DNA from: Macrostomum lignano
Lineage: Eukaryota
Reading direction: 5' to 3'
DNA: 64,000 nt
Assembly: GCA_002269645.1 (NCBI GenBank)
Contig: NIVC01001231.1
Span: 62,001 to 126,000, forward strand
Part shown: in pieces, positions 3,673-57,334 of the stretch
Layout: the number at the start of each line of letters is the position of its first letter
Numbering within the stretch: position 1 is the first letter of the stretch
Program-made: the position numbers and the translations under genes
Notes under the pieces: model-generated
What the model was told of the DNA's origin: nothing
The model's input: only the letters and a program-made list of their open reading frames with translations
Databases searched by the model: none

Positions 3673-6285
3673 TTAATTAGAGAGCCAATATTGGTCAGCT
3701 CCAGATGGCTGGAATCCTGGGACAGGCTGGGCTAACTGGCTGAATTCAATTGGCAACAATGTTTTCAGCCGCTGAGTTGAGTCATCATGAATCAAATTGC
3801 AATAAATATTGTATACAAACACAATTAATATGCTGATTATGTATAATTATAAAAATTATATAATCTATTTTGATAACTTTCATTGCCTTGCAATAGAATG
3901 CAAGCAACTCTGAAAACTCATTTGCAAGAGTTCCTAATTATAGACTGTATGATTGACTTTATTTACTCTTTTAACTTAAAGACAATTAGCAGTGCTGAAT
4001 ATAATTGGATTACATATAGTAAACTTTGTGCTCATTCTATTTCAATGTTGTATATTTTAAGTTCCCTTGACATTTTAATATATAACATATGTATCCTAAA
4101 ATAAAATTTTTATTTACCTTGGAAGCTAACCTAAATGAATGGTAATTAAAACTATGCTACTATTGATTAAATAAAAAACATTCATATTATATAACAACTT
4201 TGTTGATTTTAAATGCAAACATATACATTATAAGAAACACTGTTAAATATGGGCCTACCAACAAGGCCAGATTAGCTAGCAATAAATGTCTAACCCATAA
4301 GCCACAATGCCTAGTTTTATTATATGCATAGCCATATTCACAATTAGGAGTCAAACAATATCATATTTTCAAGACTTTTGAGACTTCAGATCTATACTTA
4401 TAAGATAATTGAGATTCAATAAAGATTCAAGATTAAGCCTAATTAGCAACTAGTAGTCTTATTTACATTATTTTATCTATTTAATGCTAATATTATTATT
4501 TGTTAAATGTGTACAATGGTGACAACAAAGGGAAAAATTTTAATTTTTTAGCTTGTTAATAACTTGAAATATCAAATATAGTATATTTGTATAATATTAT
4601 ATTATCATAGTCACAAAGAGTAAAATAGTCACAAATATTGACTTTTCTTGAGATCTCAAAACTAAGATTAAGACTGAGAAAAGTGCCAAAATCTTGATGA
4701 TTGAGACTGAAATTAAGATCTTATCTGACCCCAATTTACAATGCTTACATACAAAAATTAGCCAAGGGTTTCATATAATTCATAATCTATAAAGACCAAC
4801 CCTAAAGCATAAAGTATATATGCCTAAATGACTGAAAAGTTGAAGTCATTATATACTTAGTATATATAATTTAATTATATATGCAATATTTATGCACTTG
4901 CATTTGTTTGAGAATCAGTAGAGTGGGCAAAACCATCTTATTGCTATTTATGGGATAATTTTGCCAAAATTTGTTGTTTTAAGATTTTTGTAATCCTTTT
5001 GTAATTATTAAAAAGTAAATGAAATTGTTATTTTATACATATATTATACATATAACATACTATATTATATATATATATATATATATTTCTTAATTACATA
5101 CTATTACATTACTAATATTATTCTTAGACCTATAGTCTAAACTTAAGCAAAAAAGCTTTTTATATAGTCATAGATTCATTTTATAGATAAAGATCTCAAT
5201 TTTGCAATTGCAATTGATATTTAAGATTTTGACTTTTTTTCAATTGAATCTTGATTTTAAAAAGTGCCAAGAACAAAGAGCTCTAGGTTGAAAAACCATA
5301 TTTTAAATATAGTACACATAATACTAGAAATTAATATAAACACTGAATTCAAACAAACTGGTTTGAAAATTATTGCCAAAAATTCAACTTATTTTAATGT
5401 TATATATTGGGTAAAATAGAAAGTTCTTGGGATTTATGAGGATAACTATAGAATTTCTAGAAGCCAAATATGCAGAGGTATAAAAAGGCCATTGACTGCT
5501 ATAAAGCAACACAAATTCAAGTTTTAGCTTCAGTGCTATAGTACTACCACATTCTAGATCATGTAATATATGCCCAGAAATTCTAGTGTCCATTGGCCTT
5601 GCATGCCAGAAATAAACGTGCATAGTTAACATATATCACTCTTAAAAAATAGTATGCGTGCATATCTAGCATGTATTTTATAGAATCCCACAGAAGAGTT
5701 ACACTGTGTTAAATAGAAAAAAGATAAATAAGTTCATTTTTAAGAATAAATTTCAAGTTTTCTAAGCTTTTAAAGCTTGTAATAAGGCATTTGAACAAAT
5801 CTTTTGCATGTATTGATTTTTTGCTGTAAATAGTGTTGCTGAAAAAGCATAAAAATCAACCAAATTGTTTGCAAAAAAGGTTTCTATACAATTCAAAAAA
5901 GGTCTTTTGTTGTCATAACATAAAAAGGTCATTTACTGTCCCAATAATGGCATAGTTTTAGGAATGGGATGGGTATGCACTCAATTTTTTGGCATGCATT
6001 TGTAATTTTTTAATTTTTTTCAATTTATGTTTAAAAAGGAACTTTTTCATCTTTTTTTATTTCACAATAACTCTTCTATATGATTCTATAAAATGCATAC
6101 CAGGTATACTATGCACACATACTATTTTCTTAGGAGTGATACATGCCAATTTTATAAGCCTACTTTTGGTGTGCAAGGCCAATGCATGCCCTAATTTTTG
6201 GGCATACTATATGATCTAGAGTATAGAGAAAAAGTGATTTTTTTAAAAGTATACCAAGTTTAGTTTTCTAAAATATATAATTTTA

Positions 6286-6500
6286 GATGCTTGCTATCTG
6301 GGGGATGCTTGCTATCTGGGGGATGCTTGCTATCTGGGGGATGCTTGCTATCTTGGGGATGCTTGCTATCTTGGGGATGCTTGCTATCTTGGGGATGCTT
6401 GCTATCTGGGGGATGCTTGCTATCTAGGGGATGCTTGCTATCTAAGGGATGCTTGCAATCTGGGGGATGCTTGCTATCTGGGGGATGCTTGCTGTTTTGG
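6286..6500. repeat. 18-bp minisatellite (GATGCTTGCTATCTGGGG)n
   Basis: About 12 tandem copies. Confidence 0.95.
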
Positions 6501-7579
6501 GATGATTTCTTTTTGCATTGCACTTCATTTGAGTATTTTGTCTCTTTTCTTTGTGAAGGCTTTATTTCGCTATCTTTTTGTTACTTGTAGAGAACAGAGA
6601 TTCTATACAGATGCCCCCCAACGGGGGGCGAAGATTGCTAGTAAATTATCTAATTCTAATTCTTCTTTCTATATATGCATTATGCATAAATTATTTTAAC
6701 CTTAAAACTGCACTAAAAATAATTAGGGCCTAGTGTATGTGTATCACTCTTTTTAGTTATGGCAGGGCCTATAAGTGTGGAAATATAACAGTACAATTAA
6801 AACTATTCTTAGACTGATTTATTTTTCGAAACTAAAACATCCTCTTAGCACTTTGCCTTGTGACTTGAATAAAGGAATAGGAAAAAAGGAAAAAAGGAGC
6901 TATAGGCCTAGCTATCAGGCTAAGGCCAGGGAAGGGCAGTAAGGCTTACACTTAGAAATCTTTGTGATTTATTGCATAAATTCCTTAAAAACTTTCTATT
7001 TGTTTAATAGAGCTTTAACTAGTAAACATAATCTTGATATAGTTAAAAGTGTCGTATGTTCCACTACCAGGTGTGTGTTAATACTGAGTTAAGACCAAAA
7101 AATAAAAGAAATTAGTTTACTAATTATGTTTGATCAATTGAATTTAAATAAAGCAGAAGAATATATTATAGGATCAATTCCATGTGAAGTCGTGAAGATT
7201 GGTTAAAATCGAAATGATTATCTATCTCTATCAGAGGAATCAAATGTATAACACACACAAGGAAACCTAATTCAAGGAAATGAGTAAACTTTCAAGGAAA
7301 TCTTCTCGAAAGGGTGTATTGTTTTAACAAATTGCTTTACTTACATCAGCAAATATGAATATCAGAAGTTAAATATCAGTATGATTTGCATTTGATTTTT
7401 ATAGAAATAAGAAGAACTATATAATTTACAAAATTCTAGGAAGCAAATTAAAATACCGACTATCACCGTTGAACGATGGCTTCGTGGATTTTGGATTCAG
7501 GCTCAATCTCTTATCTTTTTGCTCTTTATAAATTAAATACGTAAGGTCTTAGATTGGCATAAATAGAGCTAGGGACAGA

Positions 7580-7695
7580 GGGCCCGTTCTATAAAGCCAT
7601 CGTAAGATAAGATCGTTCTTAGCTCCTATCTCCGTAGTGTAAAAGTTCCGACGTACGATCGAACTTACGCTACGACAGCTTTATAGTACGACCCC
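7580..7695. mobile_element. 116-bp MITE, PIF/Harbinger-like
   Basis: 18-bp imperfect TIRs GGGCCCGTTCTATAAAGC / (rc) GGGGTCGTACTATAAAGC with a 3-bp duplication AGA on both sides (7577-7579, 7696-7698). Confidence 0.65.
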
Positions 7696-8688
7696 AGAGT
7701 GTACGCGATCACTGACTGAGAAAGATATGCAGTGACGCAATGCTGTACAGAGAGAAGAGAAGGTATGAAAGTAAAGAAGGGGAGAAAGGAGACAAATTAG
7801 TGAAGGGAGAGGACAGGAGTGGAGAGGAAAGGAGAGGCCCAAGGGGGAGCAGAGGAGAAAAAAGTAAAGAGAGAGAAGATTGAGAGAAGGAAGCTGAGAT
7901 CGAAGAGATATAAACTATTTATTTATCAGGCCGGATTGATATTGTGATAATTAAGTTTCAAAAGACCCGAGGGCCGGATAGAGAGGCTTCGCGGCTGCAT
8001 GTGTCACCATGGTGCTGTATACACTGAGATGCTTGGTGGTACTGGCCATGGCTAGATCGAAAAGGGCAATTGCCAACAAGAAAAAAAATGTGTCTAAAAA
8101 TAATTAAATCTTTCCTGACATGAAGTACATCTGTAACATCCGTATTATGGATGAAGCACATCGCTTCAATGTACAATTGTACATGTAGTTGCGTCAAATG
8201 AACTTTACATGTACATGTACGCTCGTAATTCGATAACACCCGTCCCGATATATCAGAGAAGTATTTACCATTGAAATCTGAATTATCATGCATGTCATTG
8301 TTGCAAGAAAAACTTCGCTGAAAAATGATGGACAATTTCCATTAAACAGTTTTTTGAAATGCACATGCACGTACAACATGTACCTTTAATTTTTTCATAG
8401 CTCACATAGAAATGCTTCACGACGTAAGTCACGCAGTCGAGGGCCTGCAGCGCATTGTATTTCGATGGGCAACAGAAAACTGTTTAGCTCCCTGATAGGT
8501 GTTGTTGTTGCCCAGTCAATCCTTCAAACAACACCAATATTGGCCAAGAAGCGTCCCAAAGTCAGGCTTGGGGATTCGCCCAGAGTCGTATCATAGTCGT
8601 TGGTGGTAAAATATAACATGTAGTCAAAGAAGTAGGAAAGAAGTGACTCTAGACGTGACTCTAGCGAGCTTTAACGACAGGATGTCGA

Positions 8689-9447: not shown

Positions 9448-10158
9448 CTAAGCCGCAGTTTTCCGCAGTCCCGCCATGGCGGCTGCAGTCTTCGGCCTGC
9501 CGCCTCCCGTGCCGACCAGCCCAGGCGCCGAGGCTGCCGCGGCTGCCGAGGTCAAAGACGCGTCGCCACCGCCACTGCCGCCGCTGCTGCCGCCACCAGC
9601 CGCTGCTGCTGCAGCCAGCAGCGAATCTTCCGCGGCGTTGGCGGCGGTCGCGGCCGCCACCCGAGCGGCGGCGGCGGCGGTGGCCGGCCGGGGCAGCAGG
9701 CGGGCGGGCACGGAGGTGGCGCCGATCCAGTCCGTCCGCTTTGCCTCGAGAATTCGCTGCCGGTCCAGCAGCCGCATCGCCGAGTCGCCATCGTCCTCGT
9801 CGTCCTCAACGCCCGCCTCGTCCTCGCCGCCTGGAGCGTCGCCGCCGTTGCGAATCCGGCGCCGGCGCGGCGGCAAGTCCGGCAGGCAGCTCGCCTGTCG
9901 GATTCGGCGTTTGTTGAACCAGTCGTCAACCGAGGGCGTCAGCTTGGTGTCCATCATGTGCGCCAGGTCCACGAGAAGGTCGCGCTCCGTCTTCTCGTTG
10001 TCGCGGGTCCAGGCCGACCAGTCTCGGTTGAACTTGGCGCACTCGCTGCCCAGCTGCAGCTGCATCTTCATGTTCTTGTCGCGGACGCGGATCTCAGCGA
10101 ACGGTCGGGCAGTCTTGCGCCGGCCCCGGCTGCCCCGCTGCTGCTGCTGCTGCTGCAT
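9448..10158 (-). CDS. Hypothetical protein (236 aa from ATG 10158), orphan, Q/R-rich N-terminus and Ala/Gly-rich C-terminus
   Basis: Long GC-rich ORF with a complex core (RPFAEIRVRDKNMKMQLQLGSECAKFNRDWSAWTRDNEKTERDLLVDLAHMMDTK). Acceptor CCCTTGCAG at 10191 and a candidate 55-nt 5'UTR intron (10191-10245). No family recognised. Confidence 0.6.
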   Translation of the reverse strand: MQQQQQQRGSRGRRKTARPFAEIRVRDKNMKMQLQLGSECAKFNRDWSAWTRDNEKTERDLLVDLAHMMDTKLTPSVDDWFNKRRIRQASCLPDLPPRRRRIRNGGDAPGGEDEAGVEDDEDDGDSAMRLLDRQRILEAKRTDWIGATSVPARLLPRPATAAAAARVAAATAANAAEDSLLAAAAAAGGGSSGGSGGGDASLTSAAAAASAPGLVGTGGGRPKTAAAMAGLRKTAA

Positions 10159-11131
10159 GCTGCGCCTGTATTTGCTGCTTGCTCGCGACACTGCAAGGGC
10201 TTGGAACTCAACTATATAGCCTTATTGTATTCAATAAGCTTTCACCTGCCTGTCAGCGCAACCACCAGCGCAGCAGAGAAGGGAAATTGCAAAAAAAGAG
10301 ACGCTGGGTTGGCCTTTTGTTGCCGTTGGCGATCTCCTTCCTATAAATTTTATTCTTCTTTTGCACCGGGAATCCGTGCCTGTGCCTGTGCCGTGCGTCT
10401 GGCCAAGCGCTAAATGCGCAGTCTGAGACGAGCGGAGACACTTGAGAAGAATGGATCGTCTGAGAGGGGAGCTTTTCTATGCACTTGGCCTCCAGGCAGG
10501 TCCGGACTTGCAACCCCCCTCTGTGCCAGGAGTATAAGCTCACTCACCCGCTTTCTCTGTCTCTGAGTTTGCTCTGATGGATACAAAAGAAACACACAAG
10601 GTAAGAGAGAGAGAAGACTCTAAACACTTTTTCGCCGGTGCCTAACTCGCTTACAGACTGAAGCAGTCCTCCTTCTCGTGTCGAAATGTCGCCAACTCAT
10701 GGCAGTTTAACCAGCAAGGGGACATTGCTCAGTGTAGTTAAATGAGTACTGGCGCCACTTGATGCACTGCAGGACCACAAGCAAGCAATCCAAGCTAGTT
10801 ATTTGTGCAAACAGTTTTGCATCGCCCTACTACTGACAGTAATATAAAACACTCCCAGAGCTATACCGCACAATACTCAGGTTGGCATGCCTACGCCAAT
10901 TCAAAATGAATTTAAGGCAAGCACCGGGCTGCAGCTCCAGTATTGAATTTTAAGTGTGTTGGTCACAACTCGTGTGCAGCGGCTATTGAAGAGTCTGCTT
11001 TAATCAAATATACCAACAAATGGCGCAGAGATCCATACAGAGCATCACCAGCATGCTATTGAAATTATCAGACAGCTGAGAACTCGGGCTTCGTGAAAGT
11101 GAGTTGTTGTTAATATTCTACGGTAGAATGC

Positions 11132-11572
11132 TCAGACGGCCTCTTGCTGCGGCCACCAGCGCTTGTGTCCGTGTCCGGAGGCAGCCGCCACTTCGCGCAC
11201 CTGGGCGGGCTCGGACGGCTGGTCCCAGGCCGGCTGCCCGCCGTTGTGATGCCGCTTCACCTCGATGTTGCCGGCATCGTAGTACTTGACTGGCCACCAC
11301 CGCTTGTGCACGCTGCATGCATTGGTTTTGGGGGGTTGTAATTAGGCAAGCGAGTCTGTCAAACTTGACAACTTGAGGAAATCAGCCAGTCAGTCATGAC
11401 TCACCCGCCGGCTGACGGGTGCGCATCGGCTAGGAGGGCGCAGCTGCCGAAAAGGGCTGGAAAAAATTAATAAACCCCGTTATTTTTAGTCAACTCAAAC
11501 AACAAATCCAACGCCAAGTCGGGTGTGCTACTTACCAACGGCTAGAAGTAGTACGGTTGGCAAGAGGCGCAT
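11132..11572 (-). CDS. Secreted neuropeptide prepropeptide, 89 aa (KR-WWP peptides)
   Basis: Exons 11572-11536, 11456-11405, 11312-11132 (37+52+181=270 nt) with GTAAG/GTGAG donors and CAG acceptors. Protein: MRLLPTVLLLAVALFGSCALLADA-HPSAGGVH-KR-WWPVKYYDAGNIEV-KR-HHNGGQPAWDQPSEPAQVREVAAASGHGH-KR-WWPQQEAV*. Confidence 0.85.
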
Positions 11573-11667
11573 TTTGTTTCTGCTGCACTGGGAGCTATAG
11601 GAGCGTGGAGTCGGGTAGGGCGCGGTCAGGCAGGACCATGCAAGAGTTGGCTGGGAGTGGCGGGGCG

Positions 11668-11675
11668 CTTATATA
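11668..11675 (-). promoter_or_regulatory. TATA box of the WWP precursor gene
   Basis: TATATAAG on the minus strand about 95 nt upstream of ATG 11572. Candidate ATTAAA polyA signal at 10999-11004. Confidence 0.55.
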
Positions 11676-12248
11676 TTGTATTGCATCTCAAGCGACTTTG
11701 ACGAGCCAATGACCTATCAGGTCAAGTCAGTGCAGAACCAATTGGATCAATTTGTCTAATCTGTAATCGTATGCGCGATATGACTAAAAATTCGCTTTGA
11801 AAATTTGCCGCACGAGTAATTAATTGAATTGAGCGTCAAGTTCGCCTGGGGCAAAAAACTTCTCGCTGTTTTACAATCCACTGTTGAAAAGGGGGGGGGG
11901 AGAGCGGGGCAGCGCAACGTCCCCTGGTTCGACTCCAGGTTAGATTAGAAAGTCAGGGCCGCTGTACACCCCGAGTGAGCGTGTGTACGAGTGCTGTGCC
12001 TGCGGACATTGTTGGCGCGCTTGCATGTGCTCAGAATATGGAATGCGATCTCAAGACATCATTTTTCCGATGCGAAAGAAAATTAGCGGTTCTCGCTGCA
12101 ACAGGCGGTACGACAAATACAAGTTCTCTACCGACCTGCAGCTGATTTTTACGAAAGTCGAGTGTAGCGTCCATCGCCAAGCGCAGGCGCACCCTGTCAG
12201 GGGGCATCACAAACCCGAAAAATCACAACTCCGAAAGCACTTCCCATC

Positions 12249-12435
12249 ATAAACCCGAAATATCATAAACCCGAAATATCATAAACCTGAAATATCATAA
12301 ACCCGAAATACCACAAACCCGAAATACCACAAACCCGAAATATCACAAACCCGAAATACCACAAACCCGAAATACCACAAACCTGAAATACCACAAACCC
12401 GAAATACCACAAACCCAAAATACCACAAACCCGAA
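12249..12435. repeat. 16-bp minisatellite (CAAACCCGAAATACCA)n
   Basis: About 11 tandem copies. Confidence 0.9.
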
Positions 12436-13965
12436 TTATCAAAACTCCGAAAGTGCTAAAAATATCCAATGATATTTCAGGTTTATGATGGCTTCTTTGG
12501 CTTTATGATGTCAGTCAGAGTTTAGATTAGCAAACCATAAAATAAGAGTACGAAGACTGCGAAACCACATGCCATGTGGGGGTTAAAAGTGAAGTTCAAT
12601 TTAAGTGCAGTTGGAACTTTTATAGTGCTCCTCGTGATAAATTTGAGCTGGAAATTTCTGATGAGGTTTCAAATTTTTAAAACCTACCGCAGAGGACAAG
12701 GTATTTTTACCCAATGACTCAATATAGAAAGTCTAGCAAAATTTCATCAAAGCCAGAATGAAACTGCCATGAGGCTTCATATTTGCTTCATAAATAAGCC
12801 GAAATACTCTGTTTCTGCACAAGATTTACATTCCTACAATACAACGTGATGCAACTCCAATCGAAAGCGCTTAACCTTGACTTGAGCTGATTACATTGAC
12901 TCCACAGTTTTGGATTCAGTTAAAAAACTCAGAGACAGTTGGTGTCCATTCCCGGAGAACATGCCTTCCAGATGGCCCATTGACCAGCTCCCTGATCAGG
13001 CAGGTTCACCAAGAGCAAAGGCAAGTCAGCTTCTATACATTCAGGGGTCATCAGCCAGACCGCCCAGGGACACAACCAGCACCCTCAGGATAATTAGTGG
13101 CACCCACGAGACGTTGGATTGAAAGGCGGCAAGCGTTCCTACACCGCAGAATTTAATTGGAACACAGCAATTTTTCCCCAACGCAATCGATTTCCTGGGA
13201 AAGGAGAAAATACGGGAAAAAGGCTAATAAATCCACATCGCGCCTCGGCGCTCGTTAATGGATGGAAATGGACAGACCGGGCGTGCATTAGGCAGAGACC
13301 ACACCAGACTAATCGAATCAAAATGACCCCAACAGACCCCAGCCGGCTAGCGCAATCATCCCCGATGTGGAACCGAAGCGCAGTCAGTCGGTTTCAATTC
13401 AGAAAAAATGGTTATAGCGATGCAGATGAAATGACAAAATCACATATGCTCCAGAAGAGAGAAATTATCATCGAATTTTACATTTCACGATAGCAATTGA
13501 AAGCAGACAGAAAGCTCGGGAAAGCACTGCAGTTTTGCAAACAAATCAATGAGGCCAGAATCCCTGGTTCGATTCCCTGTGCAAACACATTCATTTTTCT
13601 GTTTGACGATCCTACAGACAATGTATTGTTTGTAGTAATGTATTGTTCTGCATTAAAATGTGAATAATGATCGTCAAATTGCTAAACAATGACGTTGCGC
13701 CAGTGTGCCTCACAGCCCTCTAAAGCCTTTCAGAAAAGCCTCTGTACTGAAAATGGCCTCAGTATAGCTTGGCCATAGACAAAATTCCGCTCCTTTTTCC
13801 ATGGAGTCCTCTTTCTGCTCACAGGGTGTGGAAATTGATTGCCTTAGTTAGAAAACTTATTGCGCCTTCCAGCCATTTTGGTTTGGGCCATAGACTACAC
13901 TTTGACTAGGCTCCGTGTACACTTTTAAAAGCGTCCATCGGAAAATTGACTGAAACAGCGATATT

Positions 13966-15804: not shown

Positions 15805-18800
15805 TCAAGGCATGTACAGCCGCTCGCACTTCCTTTCAGCTGATGACGCAACGTCACCGGCGGGCCGGCAGCTGTCGGTCACCCAGTCGGCCGTGACAAC
15901 GTGGATTCGGCGCCGCTGGTCCCGGCTGGCGGCCTCTCGAATCTGTCGCAGCCGGCTGGCGTCCTCGTCAGGCCGAACCACCGCGTGCGTCACCGACGGA
16001 GTCAACGAGGCGGCGAGGCGGCCGCCGGCCCGACGGACATCGGCGGCAAGTTCGCGCCAGCGGCCGTCCGGATCTCGGCGAGTTGTTGGATCGCCTGGTG
16101 GGGCGGGGAGAATTGAACTGCATTGCTCTACTACTGACAGTAGTAGCACTGGTTACCGATTCAGGCGTCTTTTGGGGAGGTCAGGATCGGCTTGGGGCGA
16201 TTCTTGAGGTGGTTTGATGGCGATTTTTGAGGTGATTTGAGAGCAATTTGGAGGTGCCTTGAGGGCGATTTTAAGGGCCGTTCACCAATGAGGAGGCAGC
16301 AATCCAGATACACAGTGCAGCCGGCCAGCGGCAGTCCCACATCGTCCGGCAGCAGCTCGGTCGGCCATTCAGCCTCGACTTCGTCATCGTCCGCATAGTC
16401 GTCGGCGGCAGCAGTTCCCGAAGTCGACTGGCCGCAGTGAGTTTTGTCCAGCAATTCTCCGAGAGCCTGCGGCGTCACCGGCTTCGTGTAGCTGTCGCCG
16501 AACTCGTCGTGGCTGCCGACCGCCGCCGACGCCGCGCGCTCCTCTTTGGCCAGAGTGGCCGGCCGGGCAAAGTGGACGAACTGGCGGGTGAGCGGCAGCA
16601 GGCGGCCGGCCTCCAGGCTGGCCAGCAGCCAGTCGGCGGTGGCCACATCGTGCCGGCCGCTGGCGATCAGGTTGCGCGCCCTGGCGTTCACCGAGTGCGC
16701 CACCACGCAGCGGGTGGCCCTGCCGGGATTCTGGACGACCCGGCCGCCGGCGGCCAGCACCCGGCGCTCCAGCTCGGCTTTGGGCGCCGCCTCCAGGCCG
16801 TTCAGCACCATCAGCTCGCAGCCGGTCAAGAAGCCGGCCGTATCGGCAGCGGCCGAGACACCGACAAACTGAGAGCCAACCTGGGGCCGGGCTGCCGCCG
16901 CCCTGGCTATCGGAGCCCGACGCTGTCGTTTCCGTCCTGGCGGCGACGTTGTGGATGACGCTGCCGCTCCATCTTCGTTGTCTTCGCAGTCGTTGTCGTC
17001 ACGATTGCCGCCGACGGGCAGCACCGAGCGGGCCAGCTTGCCCTGACTGCGCAGCCGCAGGGCCGTCAGCTGGGCGACGCTGGTCGCCTGCCTGCAGGTT
17101 TTGTCTTCGCGAAAGCCGACAACGCGGGGGAAGCGCAGAGTGTAGCCTGTGGCGTAGGCGTCCGAGGCCACGATCTCGCTGGCCCGGACCTGCAGTGCGG
17201 TCATGAGCAGTGAGCAATCTATGAGCAGTGATGAGCAATCTATGAGCAGTGATGAGCAATCTATGAGCAGTGATGAGCAATCTATGAGCAGTGATGAGCA
17301 CTGCAATCTATGAGCAATGATGAGCACTGCAATCTATGAGCAGTGATGAGCACTGCAATCTATGAGCAGTGATGAGCACTGCAATCTATGAGCAGTGATG
17401 AGCAATCTATGAGCAGTGATGAGCACTGCAATCTATGAGCAATGATGAGCACTGCAATCTATGAGCAGTGATGAGCACTGTAATCTATGAGCAGTGATGA
17501 GCACTGCAATCTATGAGCAATGATGAGCACTGCAATCTATGAGCAGTGATGAGCACTGCAATCTATGAGCAATGATGAGCACTGCAATCTATGAGCAATG
17601 ATGAGCACTGCAATCTATGAGCAGTGATGAGCACTGTAATCTATGAGCAGTGATGAGCACTGCAATCTATGAGCAGTGATGAGCACTGCAATCTATGAGC
17701 AGTGATGAGCACTGCAATCTATGAGCAGTGATGAGCACTGCAATCTATGAGCAGTGATGAGCAATCTATGAGCAGTGATGAGCACTGTAATCTATGAGCA
17801 GTGATGAGCACTGCAATCTATGAGCAGTGATGAGCACTGCAATCTATGAGCAGTGATGAGCACTGCAATCTATGAGCAGTGATGAGCACTGCAATCTATG
17901 AGCAGTGATGAGCACTGCAATCTATGAGCAGTGATGAGCACTGCAATCTATGAGCAGTGATGAGCACTGCAATCTATGAGCAGTGATGAGCACTGCAATC
18001 TATGAGCAGTGATGAGCACTGCAATCTATGAGCAGTGATGAGCACTGCAATCTATGAGCAGTGATGAGCAATCTATGAGCAGTGATGAGCACTGCAATCT
18101 ATGAGCAGTGATGAGCAATCTATGAGCAGTGATGAGCAATCTATGAGCAGTGATGAGCAATCTATGAGCAGTGATGAGCAATCTATAAGCAGTGATGAGC
18201 AATCTATGAGCAGTGATGAGCAATCTATGAGCAGTGATGAGCAATCTATGAGCAGTGATGAGCAATCTATGAGCAGTGATGAGCAATCTATGAGCAGTGA
18301 TGAGCAATCTATGAGCAGTGATGAGCACAGACAGCAATTAGCCGACCTGAACCACAAAGGAGTTGCTGGGATCAATCCACACGTCCGGCCGCTCCCGCTG
18401 CCCATCAGCCAGCCGGAAGGCCTCCGGCGGGCTGCGCTTATCGAACCGCTGCCAATGCTGAGCCATCTTCATGTTGTACTCGAACAGAGTCTGCTTGGAG
18501 TAGCCGCTGCCCACCTTGCAGAAGCTCAGGTACTTCACGCTGGCACCGCCATCTCCATCATCGTCTTCGCCGCCACCCGCTGCGCCAACGTCGTCCTCGC
18601 CGACGTCGGGCAGGGCGCAGAGGAAGTGGCTGCACATGCCGGCCCGGTGGCCACTGCCGAAGTAGCCGCCAACGATGACGCAGTCGACATCGTCAACGAG
18701 GCCGCCGACGAACTCCGGCTTGAGCTTGAACCAGCCGGCCTTGCGGCTCGCCACGCTGTACACCGAGTCAGCCAGCTTGGCCATCAGGCCTTCTTCGCGC

Positions 18801-21800
18801 GATTCAATTGCGGCATTGAATTTCTCCACAGCTTCGGCCTGTGTGGAGGCCAGGCTCCACTCGGAGATGAGCAGCCGGCCCGGCACCGGGGCCAGCACCT
18901 GTTGATGCAGCACCGGCTCTCATTGTAGTGACGCCTGACACCCCACCCCCTGATGTCACTCGCCCTGACACCCCACCCCCTGATGTCACTCGCCCCGACA
19001 CCCCACCCCCTGATGTCCTCGCTTGACACCCCACCCCTGATGTCACTCGCCCTGACACCCCACCCCCTGATGTCACTCGCCCTGACACCCCACCCCCTGA
19101 TGTCACTCGCCCTGACACCCCACCCCCTGATGTCACTCGCCCTGACACCCCACCCCCTGATGTCACTCACTCTGACACCCCACCCCCTGATGTGTCACTC
19201 GCTCTGACACCCCACTCCCTGATGTCACTCACTCTGACACCCCAACCCCTGATGTCACTCGCTCTGACACCCCACTCCCTGATGTCACTCGCCCCGACAC
19301 CCCACTCCCTGATGTCACTCGCCCCGACAACTGAATCAGTCATCATTGTCACTCCCTCCGGCACCTGAATCAGTCATCATTGTCACTCCCTCCGGCACCT
19401 GAATCAGTCATCATTGTCACTCCCTCCGGCACCTGAATCAGTCATCATTGTCACTCCCTCCGGCAACTGAATCAGTCATCATTTTCACTCCCTCCGGCAA
19501 CTGAATCAGTCATCATTTTCACTCCCTCCGGCAACTGAATCAGTCATCATTGTCACTCCCTCCCGCAACTGAATCAGTCATCATTGTCACTCCCTCCGGC
19601 AACTGAATCAGTCATGATTGTCACTCCCCCGGCAACTGAATCAGTCATGATTGTCACTTATTCGGCAACTCAGTCATCTATTGTCACCCCGCAGTCCCCA
19701 GCCAGCTCACCAACCTGATTATCAAGAATTCTTTTCCGCTCAACAAGCGGCCGGTCGGTGAGCACTCGGCCGTTGAGCAGGATGAGGTCGAACACCACAA
19801 AGCAGGGCACGTAGCCCCGCACGGACACTCTCTTAATATCGAAGTCCTGCGCCTTGGAGCCCATGGTGTTGGTCTCCAGGTTGAAGCCCATCATCTCGCC
19901 GTCAAGAATGCAGTTGTCAACGCCGGGCAGGAAGGCGGACGCCAGATGCGGAGTCAGGTTGCCCGGCCCGTCGGGAGCCGCTCCGTAGGTGGCCGTCCAC
20001 TCCAGGCCGCTGCGCGACCAGTACCTGTAGCCGCTGCCCGACTTGTGCAGCTGCATTCGCTCGCCATCAAACTTCACTTCGAGCAGGAATGGCCGGCCGG
20101 CGAACAGTTCGCCCAGCTGCAGGACGCTCGCCGCCTCGCCCAGCATCGGCCGGAACGGCGTGTTCAGGGCGACGCCGATTTCGTGCAGACGGACGCCTGG
20201 ATAGTGCAGGCTGGTGCACACCTGGGACAGGTGGAAGATGGTGATGATAATCCAATTCAAAATCTCACTGAGAGTTATGATAATCCACATCAAAATCTCG
20301 CTGAGAATCATGATAATCCACCACAAAATCTCGCTGAAAGTCATGATAATCCGCTTCAAAATCTCACTGAGAGTCATGATAATCCAATTCAAAATCTCAC
20401 TGAGGATCATGATAATCCAATTCAAAATCTCACTGGAGATCATGATAATCCGCTTCAAAATCTCACTGAGAGTCATGATAATCCAATTTAAAATCTCACT
20501 GAGAGTCATGATAATCCAATTTAAAATCTCACTGGAGATCATGATAATCCAATTAAAAATCTCAGTGGAGATCATGATAATTAATTTAAAATCTCACTGG
20601 AGATCATGATAATCCAATTCAAAATCTCACTGAGAGTCATGATAATCCACCACAAAATCTCGCTGAAAGTCATGATAATCAGCTTCAAAATCTCACTGAG
20701 AGTCATGATAATCCAATTTAAAATCTCACTGAGAATCATGATAATCCAATTCAAAATCTCACTGAGAGTCATGATAATCCAATTCAAAATCTCACTGGAG
20801 ATCATGATAATCCAATTCAAAATCTCACTGAAAGTCATGATAATCCAATTTAAAATCTCACTGAAAGTCATGATAATCCAATTCAAAATCTCACTGGAGA
20901 TCATGATAATCCAATTCAAAATCTCACTGGAGATCATAATAATCCAATTCAAAATCTCACTGAAAGTCATGATAATCCAATTCAAAATCTCACTGAGAAT
21001 CATGATATGATAATCCACCTCAAAATCTCACTGAAAGTCACGATAACCACCTCAAAATCTTACTGGAGATCATGATAATCCGCTTCAAAATCTCACTGAG
21101 AGTCATGATAATCCACCTCAAAATCTCGCTGAAAGTCATGATAATCCGCTTCAAAATCTCACTGAAAGTCATGATAATCCGCTTCAAAATCTCACTGAGA
21201 ATCATGATATGATAATCCACCTCAAAATCTCACTGAAAGTCACGATAATCCACCTCAAAATCTCACTGGAGATCATGATAATCCGCTTCAAAATCTCACT
21301 GAGAGTCATGATAATCCACCTCAAAATCTCGCTGAAAGTCATGATAATCCACCTCAAAATCTCACTGGAGATCATGATAATCCGATTCAAAATCTCACTG
21401 AGAATCATGATAATCCACCTCAAAATCTCGCTGAAAGTCATGATAATCCGCTTCAAAATCTCACTGAGAATCATGATAATCCACCTCAAAATCTCGCTGA
21501 AAGTCATGATAATCCGCTTCAAAATCTCACTGAGAGTCATGATAATCAACCTCAAAATCTCGCTGAAAGTCATGATAATCCGCTTCAAAATCTCACTGAG
21601 AGTCATGATAATCCAATTCAAAATCTCACTGGAGATAATGATAATCTATTCAAAACCTAAAAACTTGAGTCAGGATAATCCGTTTCAAAATCCCAGGTTC
21701 CTATGATAAACATGCGGCGCACCTTCTCCAGACTCTGTGTGACATCGTACAGTGCCTCGGCATCGGGGTGGAAGGCGGACAGCACCGTCTTCTCGCTGAC

Positions 21801-23671
21801 GCCAGCCCGAATGTCGCGCAGCACAATGCGGATGAGCCACTTCTGCTCCAGCGCGGTGGTCTGCTTGATCAGCGCGAACAGCTGGCGCTTCACTTCGTCT
21901 CGTTTGTTGGCCGCATTTGCCGCGCTCATTGCGGTCAGGTGATTGTTCACCTGCGGGCGGGGCGGCTCTGCTGCATGCTCTGCGTGTAAGCACACGCGCC
22001 AGCCATGAGCCATCTAATCTAGATGCCTATCCTACAACTCCTAATGTCTACCCCCCAACTCTCAATGTCTACCCTCCAACTCCTAATGTCTACCCTCCAA
22101 CTCCTAATGTCTACCCTCCAACTCCTAATGTCTACCCTCCAACTCCTAATGTCTACCCCCCAACTCTCAATGTCTACCCTCCAACTCCTAATGTCTACCC
22201 TCCAACTCCTAATGTCTACCCTCCAACTCCTAATGTCTACCCTCCAACTCCTAATGTCTACCCCCCAACTCCTAATGTCTACCCCCCAACTCTCAATGTC
22301 TACCCTCCAACTCCTAATGTCTACCCCCCAACTCCTAATGTCTACCCTCCAACTCCTAATGTCTACCCCCCAACTCTCAATGTCTACCCTCCAACTCTCA
22401 ATGTCTACCCTCCAACTCCTAATGTCTACCCCCCAACTCCTAATGTCTACCCTCCAACTCCTAATGTCTACCCTCCAACTCTCAATGTCTACCCTCCAAC
22501 TCCTAATGTCTACCCCCCAACTCCTAATGTCTACCCTCCAACTCCTAATGTCTACCCCCCAACTCTAAATGTCTACCCTCCAACTCCTAATGTCTACCCT
22601 CCAACTCCTAATGTCTACCCCCCAACTCTCAATGTCTACCCTCCAACTCCTAATGTCTACCCTCCAACTCCTAATGTCTACCCTCCAACTCCTAATGTCT
22701 ACCCCCCAACTCTCAATGTCTACCCTCCAACTCCTAATGTCTACCCCCCAACTCCTAATGTCTACCCCCCCCAACTCTCAATGTCTACCCTCCACCTCTC
22801 AATGTCTACCCTCCACCTCTCAATGTCTACCCTCCAACTCTAAATGTCTACCCTCCAATTCTCAATATCCACCCTCCAACTCTGAATGTCTACCCTCCAC
22901 CTCTCAATGTCTACCCTCCAACTCTCAAGGTCTACCCTCCAATTCTCAATGTCCACCCTCCAACTCTTAATGTCTACCCTCCAACTCCTAATGTTTAACG
23001 TCTAACTCTTAATGTCTATCCTTCAAATCTCATTTCTATCCTTCAAATCTCATTTCTATCCTTAAATCTCAATGTCTAGCCATCAAATCCTTGTCTACCA
23101 CCCAACCAAACGTAAGAACAGCCAGTCTCCGGCCAGATGCAGCTCTCACCTGCTGCACAGTCAGCGCGCCCTGCCGCGGGCACCGGTGCTGCAATATGAA
23201 ATAAGCGGTAGCCGCGAAATCCCCAGTGGTGGCGGCCGACTGTCCGGGATTTTTATAATTCAGCAGCTTCTTCGCCTCCGGACTGTCCCGGCCGAGGCAG
23301 AGAATCTCTATGTAGATCTTGGCCAGCATGAACTCCTTGATGCCGTAGGCTGGCCGGGCGCGGTCGCTCAATGGCAACAGCAGACGCATGGCTGGATAAA
23401 ATGAGTCTTGCTGCTGCTGTTGAGACTGTGTCTGCTGCTGGGGCTGCTGGGGCAGCGGCTCTGGACCGTGCAGCTCAGTGTGCAGCTGTCTCCAGGTAGC
23501 CATGAACTCCTTGATTGGCCCGAGCTTCTCCTTGTGCCCACGGAGCCGGCTGACCCGTTCGAGCAGGCCCGCCAGCTGGTTGAAGGGCACTCGGGAGGCC
23601 ACGGTTGGCGAGCCGGCCGAGGCCTCAGCTGACTGCGAGTTGCCGCTGCCTGCCGCCGACATGGCCGCCAT
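15805..23671 (-). CDS. LIG4: DNA ligase IV (~1000 aa, 6 coding exons, tandem C-terminal BRCT domains)
   Basis: Exons 23671-23150, 21950-21723, 20221-19715, 18898-18347, 17189-16286, 16094-15805, all GT-AG and phase-compatible. Motifs: DSFYPAMRLLLP, EQKWLIRIVLRD, catalytic EVKFDGERMQLH, EEGLMAK, WFKLKPEF, TLRFPRV; BRCT motifs GGRVVQNP..WLL and VTADWVTDS. Confidence 0.95.
17203..18327. repeat. 21/26-bp minisatellite (ATCTATGAGCAGTGATGAGC[ACTGC]A) filling LIG4 intron 4
   Basis: More than 40 tandem copies. Confidence 0.95.
18934..19672. repeat. Two adjacent minisatellites (30-bp CCCTGACACCCCACCCCCTGATGTCACTCG; 34-bp CTGAATCAGTCATCATTGTCACTCCCTCCGGCAC) in LIG4 intron 3
   Basis: About 13 and about 10 copies, switching near 19325. 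Confidence 0.95.
20243..21650. repeat. 33-bp minisatellite (GAGAGTCATGATAATCCAATTCAAAATCTCACT) filling LIG4 intron 2
   Basis: About 42 copies. Confidence 0.95.
22024..23000. repeat. 21-bp minisatellite (TGTCTACCCTCCAACTCCTAA) filling LIG4 intron 1
   Basis: About 45 copies. Confidence 0.95.
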
Positions 23672-23694
23672 TCAACTGGAGAAGAAGACGAAAG

Positions 23695-24420
23695 ACCTTT
23701 GCCTCACCGACCAATCAGAGAGTAGCTAACCTTTGCCTCACCGACCAATCAGAGTCGCTAACCTTTGCCTGACCGACCAATAAGAGGGTCGCTAACCTTT
23801 GCCTCACCGACCAATCAGAGAGTAGCTAACCTTTGCCTCACCGACCAATCAGAGTCGCTAACCTTTGCCTCACCGACCAATCAGAGAGCCGCTAACCTTT
23901 GCCTCACCGACCAATCAGAGGGTCGCTAACCTTTGCCTCACCGACCAATCAGAGAGTAGCTAACCTTTGCCTTACCGACCAATCAGAGGGTCGCTAACCT
24001 TTGCCTCACCGACCAATCAGAGAGTCGCTAACCTTTGCCTCACCGACTAATCAGAAAGTCGCTAACCATTGCCTCACCGACTAATCAGAAAGTCGCTAAC
24101 CTTTGCCTCACCGACTAATCAGAAAGTCGCTAACCTTTGCCTCACCGACCAATCAGAGGGTCGCTAACCTTTGCCTCACCGACCAATCAGAGAGTAGCTA
24201 ACCTTTGCCTTACCGACCAATCAGAGGGTCGCTAACCTTTGCCTCACCGACCAATCAGAGAGTCGCTAACCTTTGCCTCACCGACTAATCAGAAAAGTCG
24301 CTAACCTTTGCCTCACCGACTAATCCGAAAGTCGCTAACCTTTGCCTCACCGACTAATCAGAAAGTCGCTAACCTTTGCCTCACCGACTAATCGGAAAGT
24401 CGCTAACCTTTGCCTCACCG
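23695..24420. repeat. 32-34-bp minisatellite carrying CCAAT boxes immediately upstream of LIG4
   Basis: About 21 copies of GCTAACCTTTGCCTCACCGACCAATCAGAGAGTC; distal copies have ACTAATC. Confidence 0.95.
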
Positions 24421-24595
24421 ACCTGACAGCCACAGAGTGCATGAAGGTTTCTCTCTGACCAGCCACAGAGTGCATGAAGGTTTCTACCTGACCAGCCACA
24501 GAGTGCATGAAGGTTTCTACCTGACCAGCCACAGAGTGCATGAAGGTTTCTACCTGACCAGCCACAGAGTGCTTAAAGGTTTCTACCTGACCAAC
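24421..24595. repeat. 33-bp tandem repeat (ACCTGACCAGCCACAGAGTGCATGAAGGTTTCT) x5
   Basis: Five copies abutting the CCAAT array. Confidence 0.9.
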
Positions 24596-24949
24596 CAAAG
24601 TCCCTGAAATTTTCGCCCTTAATCAATGATAAACACTGTTTGGAAACTCAAATTGAAATTAGAACACAAGTCAAACAGACAGAATTTCCAGTCCAATAAA
24701 TGCGATCCACATCTAACAGCATGGTCGCCACTCAATCCTTTTTTATTTGCGATTCATTTTCAATAAAGAGTTGATTTTTTCTTAACATTCAATGGAATAA
24801 ACCAATAACAGCTGGCAGCATCTTGAAGCGAATTGATGGAGCAACCTGACAAAGGAACGCTGGCGAAAACAGGTCACTGCTAAGCCGGCCAAACACAATG
24901 TCACTAACAAGACACCCAATATCCGTCAGGCCATCGCAATCAAAAAAGT

Positions 24950-27721: not shown

Positions 27722-29023
27722 CCGGGTGTCCGGATTGAACGGAAACGCTGCTTAAAACGTCGTTAATTACGTAATCTTTCGCAAAATTCAAAATTTTGCA
27801 CGGGTGTCAGAACCAGCAGAAATCACAGAATTTAATACTTCCACTCTTGCAGCTTTATTCCTAACCATGGCTGAGCACGAGGCTCAAAGACGAGCAATCG
27901 CTGAATTACTTTGTGCTGGAAAGTCAACTAGCGACATCAGAGAAGTGCTCAATGTGAGCAGAAAGAGGATTTTCACTGTGAGGAAGCTGCTGAATGACAC
28001 AGGAGATGTCACCAAAAGACATGGGGGTGGTCATCCGAGGACAAAAAGGACAAAGAAGACCGTCGCAGCCGTTCGGGCGAAGGTCAACCGAAATCCCCGA
28101 AGGTCGATTTGCCAACTGGCACGTGAGCACGACATGAGCAAGACAACAATGTCGGAGCTCGTCAAAGAAGACCTTGGCATGGTGTCCAGGGCGGTGGTGC
28201 CGAAGAACCTCATCACTTCGAAGCAGAAGGTGTCGCGTCTCAAGCGGTGCAGGCAGTTGCTCACGTGGGTGAAGAACCACGGCTCGCTGGTGCGCGTGTT
28301 CAGCGACGAGAAACTGTTCACCTGTGACCAAGCCGTGAACAGGCGCAACACTCGCTACATCAACGCCGCCAGCAGCGCAGACACACCTGCCCACGTGAAG
28401 TACAGTATGAAGTCTAAGCACCCGGCCTCCATCATGATGCTGGGCGTCATTGCGAGCAATGGACGGAGGTGTCCCCCCATTTTCATCAACCCAGGCACCA
28501 AAGTGAATGCTGCATGCTACCAGCAGCTGCTGCAGCAGCACGTGCTGCCTTGGCTGCGTCAGCAGTACCCTGATGGACAGTACGTGTGGCAGCAGGATGG
28601 TGCTCCGGCTCACATAGCGGCCACAACCCAGCAGTTCTTGGCGGACAACATGGCGAACTTCTGGCCGAAGACGATGTGGCCGCCCTCCAGTCTGGACCTG
28701 AATCCGCTGGACTTCTCAATCTGGCAGCGTGTGGAGAGCGAGGCCTGCAGATCCTGCCACAGCAGTGTGGAAGCGCTGCAGGCTGCTGTTCGGCTGGCCT
28801 GGGAGAGAATGGACACCAACTATGTGAGGAAGGTGTGCCAGCAGTTCAGGAAGAGGCTGGAGCGCGTGATCGCGGCCAATGGCGGCCATTTTGAATGAGA
28901 ACAATGCTGACACCTTCCTATTTACTATTGTCAAAAATAAATGGTACAGCTGCTTGTCTTGCTGAGAAATTGCAAAAAATATTCAAAAAATCAGCAGCAT
29001 TTCCATTCAATCTGGACACCCAG
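27722..29023 (+). mobile_element. Tc1/mariner superfamily DD37D (maT) DNA transposon, 1302 bp, full-length
   Basis: 31-bp TIRs CCGGGTGTCCGGATTGAACGGAAACGCTGCT (27/31 identical) and TA target duplication (27720-21, 29024-25). Confidence 0.92.
27867..28898 (+). CDS. DD37D/maT transposase, 343 aa
   Basis: Uninterrupted ORF with N-terminal HTH and catalytic motifs FSDEK, QQDGAPAH, SLDLNPLD; 37 residues between the second and third Asp (counted). The canonical SPDLNP is changed to SLDLNP. Confidence 0.92.
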   Translation: MAEHEAQRRAIAELLCAGKSTSDIREVLNVSRKRIFTVRKLLNDTGDVTKRHGGGHPRTKRTKKTVAAVRAKVNRNPRRSICQLAREHDMSKTTMSELVKEDLGMVSRAVVPKNLITSKQKVSRLKRCRQLLTWVKNHGSLVRVFSDEKLFTCDQAVNRRNTRYINAASSADTPAHVKYSMKSKHPASIMMLGVIASNGRRCPPIFINPGTKVNAACYQQLLQQHVLPWLRQQYPDGQYVWQQDGAPAHIAATTQQFLADNMANFWPKTMWPPSSLDLNPLDFSIWQRVESEACRSCHSSVEALQAAVRLAWERMDTNYVRKVCQQFRKRLERVIAANGGHFE

Positions 29024-55839: not shown

Positions 55840-56758
55840 GGGATGTCAACTTAAGCACCAGAATGGAGCCCGAAGTTCAGCTCCGGACCAAACCGACTAC
55901 AATCGATAACTTGTCGGCCCAGACGACTAGAATCGCCGAGACATCCCATCCGGCTCCCTTCCTTGGGGTCCCAGGGGATAAAGGGGATAAAATGGGGATC
56001 TCATGTCAACTTAAGGCTCTGGAATGGAGCCCGAAGTTCAGCTCCGGACCAAACCGACTGCAATCGATAACTTGTCGGCCCAGACGACTAGAATCGCCGA
56101 GACATCCCATCCGGCTCCCTTCCTTGGGGTCCCAGGGGATAAAGGGGATAAAATGCAGATCTCATGTCAACTTAAGGCTCTGGAATGGAGCCCGAAGTTC
56201 AGCTCCGGACCAAACCGACTGCAATCGATAACTTGTCGGCCCAGACGACTAGAATCGCCGAGACATCCCATCCGGCTCCCTTCCTTGGGGTCCCAGGGGA
56301 TAAAGGGGATAAAATGGGGATCTCATGTCAACTTAAGGCTCTGGAATGGAGCCCGAAGTTCAGCTCCGGACCAAACCGACTGCAATCGATAACTTGTCGG
56401 CCCAGACGACTAGAATCGCCGAGACATCCCATCCGGCTCCCTTCCTTGGGGTCCCAGGGGATAAAGGGGATAAAATGGGGATCTCATGTCAACTTAAGGC
56501 TCTGGAATGGAGCCCGAAGTTCAGCTCCGGACCAAACCGACTGCAATCGATAACTTGTCGGCCCAGACGACTAGAATCGCCGAGACATCCCATCCGGCTC
56601 CCTTCCTTGGGGTCCCAGGGGATAAAGGGGATAAAATGGGGATCTCATGTCAACTTAAGGCTCTGGAATGGAGCCCGAAGTTCAGCTCCGGACCAAACCG
56701 ACTGCAATCGATAACTTGTCGGCCCAGACGACTAGAATCACCGAGACATCCCATCCGG
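55840..56758 (+). repeat. 161-bp tandem array, left arm
   Basis: ORF-track starts spaced exactly 161 bp apart (55863, 56024, 56185, 56346, 56507). Confidence 0.97.
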
Positions 56759-57334
56759 GTCCGTCTCTTGCCGAAACTTCCAACACCCCCGGCGGCTCGG
56801 ATGTGTAACTCAAAGTCTCTCCAGGAGTCACCTTCGTAGCTACCGAGAACCTCCTTGACACGAATGTTTTGAATGTAATAATCGGCTTGATTTAGTTGAT
56901 ACGGACCCACCGAAACCTCTGACAAATTCACTGTATGAATTCGGGGGAACCCCGAGCTTTTTGGATCCAGCGGGTTGACAGCAATCCATGCCCTTGTGTT
57001 AGCAGGGGGGCACGCTTCAGATCACAGTTGAAGTGCAGCTGCTCAATTTCGTCCAGTTCGTTGGACAAGAGCACTCGGCGCATGAAATTCTGCCCGAATT
57101 CGAACAACGATAGCCCTGTCCATGACGGTGGCAGCTGTTTAAATGATTCAAAACCTGGATGCGCCCGGTTGTACTTTGCCATCGAGGTCTCGATAACAAC
57201 GTCTAATCGGCTGGGCTCACTGAAGCCGGCTGACGGCAGCCACTGATACGGTTTGTGCCTCTCGATAACACATTTGTCCTGCTTAATGGCAGCAAAGCAG
57301 CACTCAACGACAGAGCGGAACATAGTGGCACAGC
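56759..57334 (-). pseudogene. Fragment of a DDE_Tnp_4-type (Harbinger/ISL2EU-like) transposase C-terminal region
   Basis: RSVVECCFAAIKQ resembles the R..VE..F..LK motif carrying the catalytic Glu. After a 1-nt frameshift near 56930 comes SVGPYQLNQADYY. Family assignment is from memory. Confidence 0.5.

Follow-up and report, generated by a model that had tools for sequence, protein, structure and literature searches.

The 64,000-nucleotide window analysed here (positions 62,001 to 126,000 of contig NIVC01001231.1 of the flatworm Macrostomum lignano) carries on its minus strand, at positions 11132-11675, a small gene whose 89-residue product contains two putative peptides starting with Trp-Trp-Pro, and which is referred to below as the WWP gene. 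Its sequence suggests that it encodes a prohormone-type preproprotein, which would be cleaved into secreted bioactive peptides and probably serves as an intercellular signal; the probability of this reading is estimated at about 0.65. The gene belongs to a two-gene family together with the M. lignano paralogue Mlig007078, and the window gene itself exists as three near-identical duplication copies. The prohormone reading is based on the comparison of the two paralogues, because the cleavage sites and one peptide are conserved between them while the spacers drift and the signal peptide is kept only in its properties.

The coding sequence of 270 nt (89 amino acids) starts with the ATG at 11572 and ends with the TGA at 11134-11132. 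It is interrupted by two introns of the GT-AG class with the donors GTAAGT (11535) and GTGAGT (11404) and with CAG as the acceptor in both cases (11457 and 11313); the positions of all elements are collected in Table 1. The spliced product is composed, in order, of MRLLPTVLLLAVALFGSCALLADA / HPSAGGVH / KR / WWPVKYYDAGNIEV / KR / HHNGGQPAWDQPSEPAQVREVAAASGHGH / KR / WWPQQEAV. The three Lys-Arg (KR) pairs lie at 11305-11300, 11257-11252 and 11164-11159, and no Gly precedes a basic site or the stop codon anywhere in the 89-residue precursor. At the DNA level the KR-WWP motif is found twice in the 64-kb window, both times in exon 3, with an expectation of 0.01; none of 100 shuffles reached two occurrences.

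This architecture had been put forward in the original prediction, which was made from the letters of the window. The proposed three-exon model, with introns of 79 and 92 nt, canonical splice sites and a product of 89 residues, equals the deposited transcript-derived coding sequence exactly. The predicted CTAAT branch point is found in intron 2, with the branch A 29 nt from the acceptor. The hydrophobic N-terminus, which ends in A-D-A in the window protein, has the properties of a signal peptide in both paralogues, and the sequence contains the three KR sites, peptide 1, the His/Gly-rich linker and WWPQQEAV as described. A TATA box upstream and an ATTAAA downstream are likewise at the expected places, and the guess of a flatworm source was correct. 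Two remarks of the prediction need to be amended. The statement that the six-frame track shows nothing meaningful was overstated, since exon 3 is an open stretch of 60 codons in one reading frame, and the gene is not "hidden", as it is already present in GenBank.

The deposited M. lignano entries, which match the 89-residue protein at 100%, are called hypothetical proteins. PAA70515.1 (BOX15_Mlig013973g1) corresponds to the window copy and is designated "partial" since its open reading frame (ORF) is open into the 5' untranslated region (UTR). PAA74368.1 (Mlig013973g2) is exactly the 89-residue product, and PAA70533.1 (Mlig028624g1) shows a single V70L difference from the window protein. The annotation of assembly GCA_002269645.1 was made solely from RNA-seq transcript assemblies (StringTie/TACO together with a mapped de novo transcriptome); gene boundaries were taken from trans-splicing and poly(A) reads and ORFs were called by TransDecoder (PMC5730564). 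Because the annotation was built only from RNA-seq transcripts, the deposited coding sequences provide transcript support for both junctions of the predicted model, 11536/11456 and 11405/11312. The additional N-terminal residues of the "partial" proteins are literal translations of the window upstream of the ATG, and the protein of a sibling copy (P0004) extends to the equivalent of 11650. These extensions into the 5' UTR mean that the transcripts reach at least 11635 in the window copy and the equivalent of 11650 in the sibling copy. Relative to the TATA box, the minimal 5' ends thereby lie 25-40 nt downstream, a canonical geometry. At the other end of the gene, the candidate poly(A) signal implies a putative 3' UTR of ~150 nt. 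The WWP gene is real and expressed.

In a 2-kb stretch around the WWP gene the window is 100% identical to NIVC01001231.1 and ~97% identical to the other two duplicated loci. The gene order is the same at all three loci: a BRCT-containing DNA ligase III-like gene, the WWP gene and a gene for a low-complexity protein of 236/237 residues; a MELK/MARK-like kinase gene was also seen at two of them within the fetched stretch. The three WWP loci correspond to the copies that the recent genome duplication in M. lignano should have left. Among the duplicated copies, the coding sequences of both genes together contain 4 substitutions in 543 nt (3 synonymous and 1 V-to-L), and the introns contain 8 in about 343 nt, plus indels. 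The slower change of the coding sequence points weakly to selection. The gene IDs Mlig013973, Mlig028624 and Mlig007078 were not mentioned in the main text of the literature searched, and they are absent from the supplementary data of Grudniewska 2018, Wudarski 2017 and Mouton 2018. They are absent from the supplements of Brand 2020 too, which is uninformative, as neighbouring IDs are likewise absent there and the ID scheme differs. A multiome atlas of M. lignano exists, with gene identifiers that differ from the Mlig013973 type.

Relatives of the precursor were sought by a word-indexed search of 5.8e9 proteins, by an exhaustive phmmer search of 1.84e9 representative proteins and in the JGI metagenomes (pattern scan followed by tblastn). 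The sole relative besides the self cluster is the paralogue Mlig007078 (phmmer, E = 1.7e-07). Its 90-residue protein, MKLITVLLVALIAAAAICSARPLEVRRFGGKRWWPVKYYDADNIQVKRVGHGRPSLELPASAWDNYPDSYISKRWWPVNPHEGSGNRRRR, is deposited as PAA58252.1, PAA83139.1 and PAA88489.1; the three loci that encode it have a C2H2 zinc-finger gene on one side and a tetraspanin gene on the other. Exon 1 of the paralogue has 37 nt and ends in phase 1, as in the window gene; exon 2 has 49 nt versus 52 nt in the window gene, both ending in phase 2; and intron 2 of both paralogues is inserted in phase 2 directly after a conserved Gly-Gly. The introns of Mlig007078 (91-98 and 81 nt) show no sequence relationship to their counterparts in the window gene.

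The block KR-WWPVKYYDA(G/D)NI(E/Q)V-KR is identical in 16 of 18 residues between the paralogues, and its 18 codons display 7 synonymous versus 2 non-synonymous differences (G to D and E to Q). The nucleotide identity amounts to 81% in the peptide block and to 41% in exon 1. In shuffle tests the similarity of peptide 1 was reached by none of 2000 shuffles, and that of peptide 2, whose shared part is WWP only, by 61 of 2000; the similarities of the linker (432/2000), the N-propeptide (498/2000) and the signal peptide (170/2000) are at chance. Accordingly, the "AWD" of the linker was rejected as a third conserved element. All three KR pairs keep their position relative to the peptides in Mlig007078, and their Arg codons differ synonymously between the paralogues (CGG/CGC, CGG/AGA). 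The KR-WWP motif is present exactly twice at each of the six loci. Judged by these sequence comparisons, selection is focused on peptide 1 and the cleavage sites.

The predicted peptide 1 of the paralogue is WWPVKYYDADNIQV (monoisotopic mass about 1795.86 Da), and its predicted peptide 2 is WWPVNPHEGSGN (about 1378.61 Da), which is followed by RRRR and shares only KR-WWP with peptide 2 of the window gene. The corresponding masses predicted for the window gene are about 1738.84 Da for WWPVKYYDAGNIEV and about 1042.49 Da for WWPQQEAV. A net charge of about -1.2 makes the predicted WWP peptides acidic. The peptides end with Val in the window gene and with Val and Asn in the paralogue, and there is no amidation Gly before any basic site or stop in either gene; for this reason the products are expected to be non-amidated, as had been anticipated. 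The notion of two "WWP" peptides is sustained by the paralogue in part, namely for the KR sites, for peptide 1 and for the WWP start, whereas the tail of peptide 2 is not conserved.

The signal-peptide features are found in both paralogues: a basic residue at position 2, a hydrophobic core with a maximum Kyte-Doolittle 12-residue mean of 2.7 and 3.2, and small residues at positions -3/-1 (ADA followed by H and CSA followed by R, respectively). The N-terminal ~24 residues would direct the chain co-translationally into the endoplasmic reticulum and would be removed, probably after A-D-A. A subtilisin-like proprotein convertase of the PC2 type would then cut after the three Lys-Arg pairs, and a carboxypeptidase would trim the basic residues. 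In flatworms, which do possess pc2, the peptide profiles are dependent on this convertase (PMC2953531). The expected products are the 14-mer, a 29-residue spacer and the C-terminal 8-mer, with free C-termini. The 14-mer would be the main bioactive product, because peptide 1 is conserved along its whole length, and it is probably an intercellular signalling peptide. The N-terminal Trp-Trp-Pro, invariant in both peptides, may act as their common recognition element. All four predicted peptides of the family start with WWP, and we infer that this motif either belongs to the active determinant or forms part of a signal for processing or protection. The production of the peptides by neurons is the most weakly inferred part of the reading; it follows only the base rate in another flatworm, Schmidtea mediterranea, where 44 of the 51 validated genes for prohormones show expression in the central nervous system and 19 of the 51 are unnamed "secreted peptide prohormones" (PMC2953531). 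A more specific proposal, which has somewhat less than an even chance of being right, is that the WWP peptides form an undescribed, Macrostomum-restricted family of non-amidated signalling peptides recognized by a receptor via the N-terminal Trp-Trp-Pro.

Several points weigh against the prohormone reading. Secretion, cleavage, the mature peptides and their activity are all predicted from sequence. The conservation argument is a single comparison of two paralogues of one species, and within it peptide 2 is conserved in its first three residues only, so that of this peptide only the WWP start is supported as functional. The gap between the coding-sequence and intron substitution rates of the duplicated copies amounts to few substitutions in absolute terms. 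Finally, the predicted peptides are acidic and non-amidated, which is not rare among invertebrate neuropeptides but is less typical of them.

The precursor might be secreted and cut at the KR pairs in just the same way in cells other than neurons, such as gland, epidermal, gut or reproductive accessory cells. The site of action would then be outside the body or between mates, and the peptides would serve as a pheromone, as a defensive or mucus-associated peptide or as a seminal-fluid peptide. All support for secretion and KR processing applies equally to this alternative, which is also favoured by the lack of amidation and by the restriction to M. lignano, as the latter fits fast-evolving exocrine or reproductive proteins. 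Moreover, some planarian prohormones are expressed in the pharynx, adhesive glands, intestine or sub-epidermal cells (PMC2953531). The strong conservation of peptide 1 despite substantial synonymous divergence is nevertheless unlike rapidly evolving reproductive proteins, and the acidic character of the peptides (about -1.2) is unlike typical cationic antimicrobial peptides; a non-neuronal source is regarded as unlikely, though by no means far-fetched. Far less credible is the absence of any functional protein, i.e. a meaningless transcribed ORF or an annotation artefact copied over the duplicated loci. The ORF is short, the database entries are all "hypothetical" and no homologues beyond one species were obtained in the searches; on the other hand, a diverged paralogue at an unrelated locus keeps the frame, the exon structure and the intron phases, the excess of synonymous changes in the core block (7 versus 2) is not that of a meaningless frame, and the doubled KR-WWP, exactly twice at all six loci, is far beyond chance.

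The third alternative is a small secreted protein that stays uncleaved and whose mature chain of ~65 residues would act undivided, for instance as a binding module that resembles a WW domain or works through its Trp residues in some other way. The UniRef entry A0A1I8ISX4 does carry the name "WW domain-containing protein", W35/W36 and W59-x-x-P62 are 23-24 residues apart in a loosely WW-domain-like manner, and "AWD" occurs in the linkers of both paralogues. In the paralogue, however, the spacing is 29-30 with W-x-x-x-P, i.e. the WW-like geometry is not kept, and the similarity of the linkers is that expected by chance (432/2000). Neither a Pfam WW or other domain nor a PDB sequence was matched, each to E<=10. 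The conservation is confined between two KR pairs, which is not expected of a 65-residue fold, and a signal peptide is predicted here, whereas WW domains are normally intracellular. AlphaFold, run on the single sequence and hence with low power, yielded a single helix (residues 4-20) followed by coil, with no beta-sheet and with low confidence past residue 20. Taken together, these observations make an uncleaved binding module improbable. The WW domain proper (Pfam PF00397) was rejected, as the expected Trp spacing of about 20-22 and the W-x-x-P are not found across the paralogues and no profile match was obtained. The name of UniRef100_A0A1I8ISX4 (P0004, 115 residues) appears to be a false-positive automatic one, which probably arises from the chance spacing of W35/36 to W59-x-x-P62.

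Beyond the two M. lignano clusters the searches gave no relatives of the WWP precursor. The word-indexed search returned the self cluster only with the single sequence and the two M. lignano clusters only with the paralogue alignment; phmmer returned no protein outside these two clusters; and none of the 175 pattern matches in the JGI metagenomes was confirmed by tblastn. There was no Pfam match at E<=0.01, and none at E<=10 for P0002, P0004 and P0005; no PDB sequence matched at E<=10. A literature search with KRWWP-type motif strings gave irrelevant matches only. As far as the protein and metagenome databases searched can tell, the WWP family is restricted to M. lignano. The original view that the precursor belongs to no known family was borne out by the Pfam, PDB, metagenome and literature sources searched. 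The main caveat is that Koziol et al. 2016, whose comparative catalogue of flatworm neuropeptides reportedly includes M. lignano, may list the precursor under an npp number. A transposable-element origin of the family was considered as well and rejected, as the six loci are two syntenic sets of three duplication copies with ordinary flanking genes.

The neighbouring genes and the repeats of the window can be described as follows. The downstream neighbour on the same strand (9449-10159, minus strand), ~1 kb after the WWP gene, encodes a low-complexity protein of 236 residues that contains poly-Gln, an acidic segment and extended Ala/Gly tracts; the gene is part of the annotation of all three copies, and the Pfam column of the annotated gene is empty. 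Upstream, the ORF fragments at 16161-20575 (minus strand) match the ATP-dependent DNA ligase (E = 2.3e-24) and BRCT domains of Pfam and belong to a DNA ligase gene of ~1000 residues, which is located upstream of the WWP gene in all three copies. Dense minisatellites occupy this DNA ligase III-like gene and its surroundings (17214-24597; Table 1). Their copy numbers vary among the three duplicated loci, judged by laddered BLAST hits, and the 21-bp array gave a spurious Pfam match to the herpesvirus Gp350 C-terminal domain.

Closer to the WWP gene, about 600-900 bp upstream of its TATA box, there is a 16-bp tandem repeat, AAACCCGAAATACCAC, present in 12.6 copies at 12251-12452 (about 12206-12940 by BLAST). 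In the region 12206-12940 the three copies diverge most strongly, with ~10% substituted columns upstream versus 1-4% in and around the gene. Because the divergence is highest at this repeat, the well-conserved promoter of the WWP gene is only a few hundred bp long.

Farther away, an ORF of 364 residues on the plus strand (27804-28898) has weak matches to helix-turn-helix and DDE_3 transposase domains, all under the Pfam cut-offs, and is probably a remnant of a Tc1/mariner-type transposon. A 161-bp satellite forms two inverted arrays about 570 bp apart, at 55843-56762 (5.7 copies, 98%) and 57335-59531 (13.7 copies, 99%), the consensus of the second being the reverse complement of the first; the staggered 122-residue "ORFs" in these arrays are an effect of the periodicity. 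The region 4001-8000 is AT-rich, with 26% GC at 4001-6000 and 36% at 6001-8000; the window mean is about 45-50% GC.

Table 1. Elements of the WWP gene and minisatellite arrays near the DNA ligase III-like gene (positions in the 64-kb window).
Feature	Position	Strand	Remarks
TATA box TATATAAG	11668-11675	-	identical in all 3 duplicated copies; function suggested by position only
5' UTR, minimal extent for the window copy	11573-11635	-	translates to the 21-residue N-terminal extension SCLTAPYPTPRSYSSQCSRNK of PAA70515.1
Exon 1, coding part, 37 nt, ends in phase 1	11536-11572	-	first 12 signal-peptide codons; same length and phase in the paralogue
Intron 1, 79 nt, GTAAGT...TTTTTTCCAG	11457-11535	-	junction agrees with the deposited transcript-derived coding sequence
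Exon 2, 52 nt	11405-11456	-	remaining signal peptide (to 11422, ...LLADA), then HPSAGG, which begins the N-propeptide
Intron 2, 92 nt, GTGAGT...CAG	11313-11404	-	CTAAT, branch A 29 nt from the acceptor
Exon 3, coding part, 181 nt	11132-11312	-	(G)VH-KR-peptide 1-KR-linker-KR-peptide 2-stop
Peptide 1, 14-mer WWPVKYYDAGNIEV	11258-11299	-	KR on both sides (11305-11300, 11257-11252)
Linker, 29 residues, HHNGGQPAWDQPSEPAQVREVAAASGHGH	11165-11251	-	His/Gly-rich at both ends; holds V70L, the sole amino-acid difference among the duplicated copies
Peptide 2, 8-mer WWPQQEAV	11135-11158	-	KR (11164-11159) before, TGA (11134-11132) after
Candidate poly(A) signal ATTAAA	10999-11004	-	sole AATAAA/ATTAAA-type hexamer within 280 nt past the stop; use presumed
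Minisatellite, 26 bp x46	17214-18328		
Minisatellite, 30 bp x13	18934-19329		
Minisatellite, 34 bp x10	19313-19658		
Minisatellite, 33 bp x43	20244-21655		
Minisatellite, 21 bp x48	22023-23026		
Minisatellite, 34 bp x21	23695-24423		

If the WWP peptides are indeed signals, the peptide repertoire of M. lignano, the only flatworm model in which stable transgenesis is available, would gain a lineage-specific ligand family. What would be unusual is the motif conserved at the N-terminus instead of the C-terminus, and the two genes represent a natural experiment showing which residues matter. Such a layout, an N-terminal motif with a variable tail, would stand out among invertebrate neuropeptides, which are mostly defined by their amidated C-termini. 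The compact TATA-driven promoter and the tiny size of the gene could make it well suited for marking the producing cells or for driving expression in them. The present analysis also corrects the misleading "WW domain-containing protein" name and supplies a functional hypothesis for six "hypothetical protein" loci. The general understanding is unchanged by it: orphan prohormones are frequent in flatworms, as the 19 unnamed ones among 51 in the planarian survey illustrate, and the mechanism is not unexpected. The WWP gene is most simply viewed as an orphan, dibasic-processed secreted-peptide precursor of an otherwise known kind.

Among the known peptide systems, the W-amide/MIP (myoinhibitory peptide) family consists of invertebrate neuropeptides that contain Trp, as the predicted WWP peptides do. 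The MIPs, W(X)6W-amide, possess an amidated C-terminal Trp, usually with a second Trp several residues upstream, whereas in the WWP peptides two Trp residues stand side by side at the N-terminus, and both a C-terminal Trp and a Gly for amidation are missing. With no C-terminal Trp-Gly in the peptides of either paralogue, membership in this family is excluded, in agreement with the original prediction. The likeness to the proenkephalin family is a functional analogy only: in both cases several KR-flanked, non-amidated peptides share an invariant N-terminal aromatic motif and have variable tails (YGGF in the one, WWP in the other). Proenkephalins, with their YGGF-starting, KR-flanked and non-amidated peptides, differ in being larger, in having a Cys-rich N-terminal domain and in holding more peptide copies, and there is no sequence or evolutionary relationship between them and the WWP precursor.

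PKYMDT is a molluscan peptide and a proposed proctolin orthologue known only from molluscs (PMC8557429). It too is a short non-amidated peptide from a small precursor, and, allowing for one inserted residue, P-K-Y-M-D-T is similar to P-V-K-Y-Y-D-A, which forms the core of peptide 1. The molluscan peptide is, however, a free hexapeptide, whereas PVKYYDA of the WWP gene is internal to a KR-flanked 14-mer and has no cleavage sites of its own. No molluscan protein was matched by phmmer over the 1.84e9 representatives or by the profile search, both of which gave M. lignano only. Kinship with PKYMDT/proctolin was rejected on these grounds, as the likeness was noticed post hoc, extends over about 4-5 residues and is most likely a coincidence. 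That peptide 1 is nevertheless a divergent PKYMDT/proctolin-like relative is a much less likely extension of the proposal of an undescribed signalling-peptide family, with only a very slight chance of being correct; a flatworm relative of PKYMDT would be of interest, since no orthologue is known elsewhere in Lophotrochozoa.

The closest parallel in kind is given by the spp ("secreted peptide prohormone") and npp ("neuropeptide precursor") genes that Collins et al. 2010 (PMC2953531) described in S. mediterranea; these likewise encode small preproproteins with a signal peptide and dibasic sites. Their products are processed by PC2, with expression mostly in the central nervous system; spp-1 to spp-19 carry no family name, and many spp and npp genes have no relatives outside flatworms (PMC2953531). 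The strings "WWP", "RWW", "KRWW" and "RRWW" were not found in the text of this planarian catalogue or in the supplements examined (PMC2953531). The WWP precursor differs from the spp and npp genes in having no sequence relationship to them and in that its peptides are known from the genes alone. By analogy of architecture, it is to such lineage-restricted flatworm prohormones of the spp/npp type that the WWP gene most plausibly belongs.

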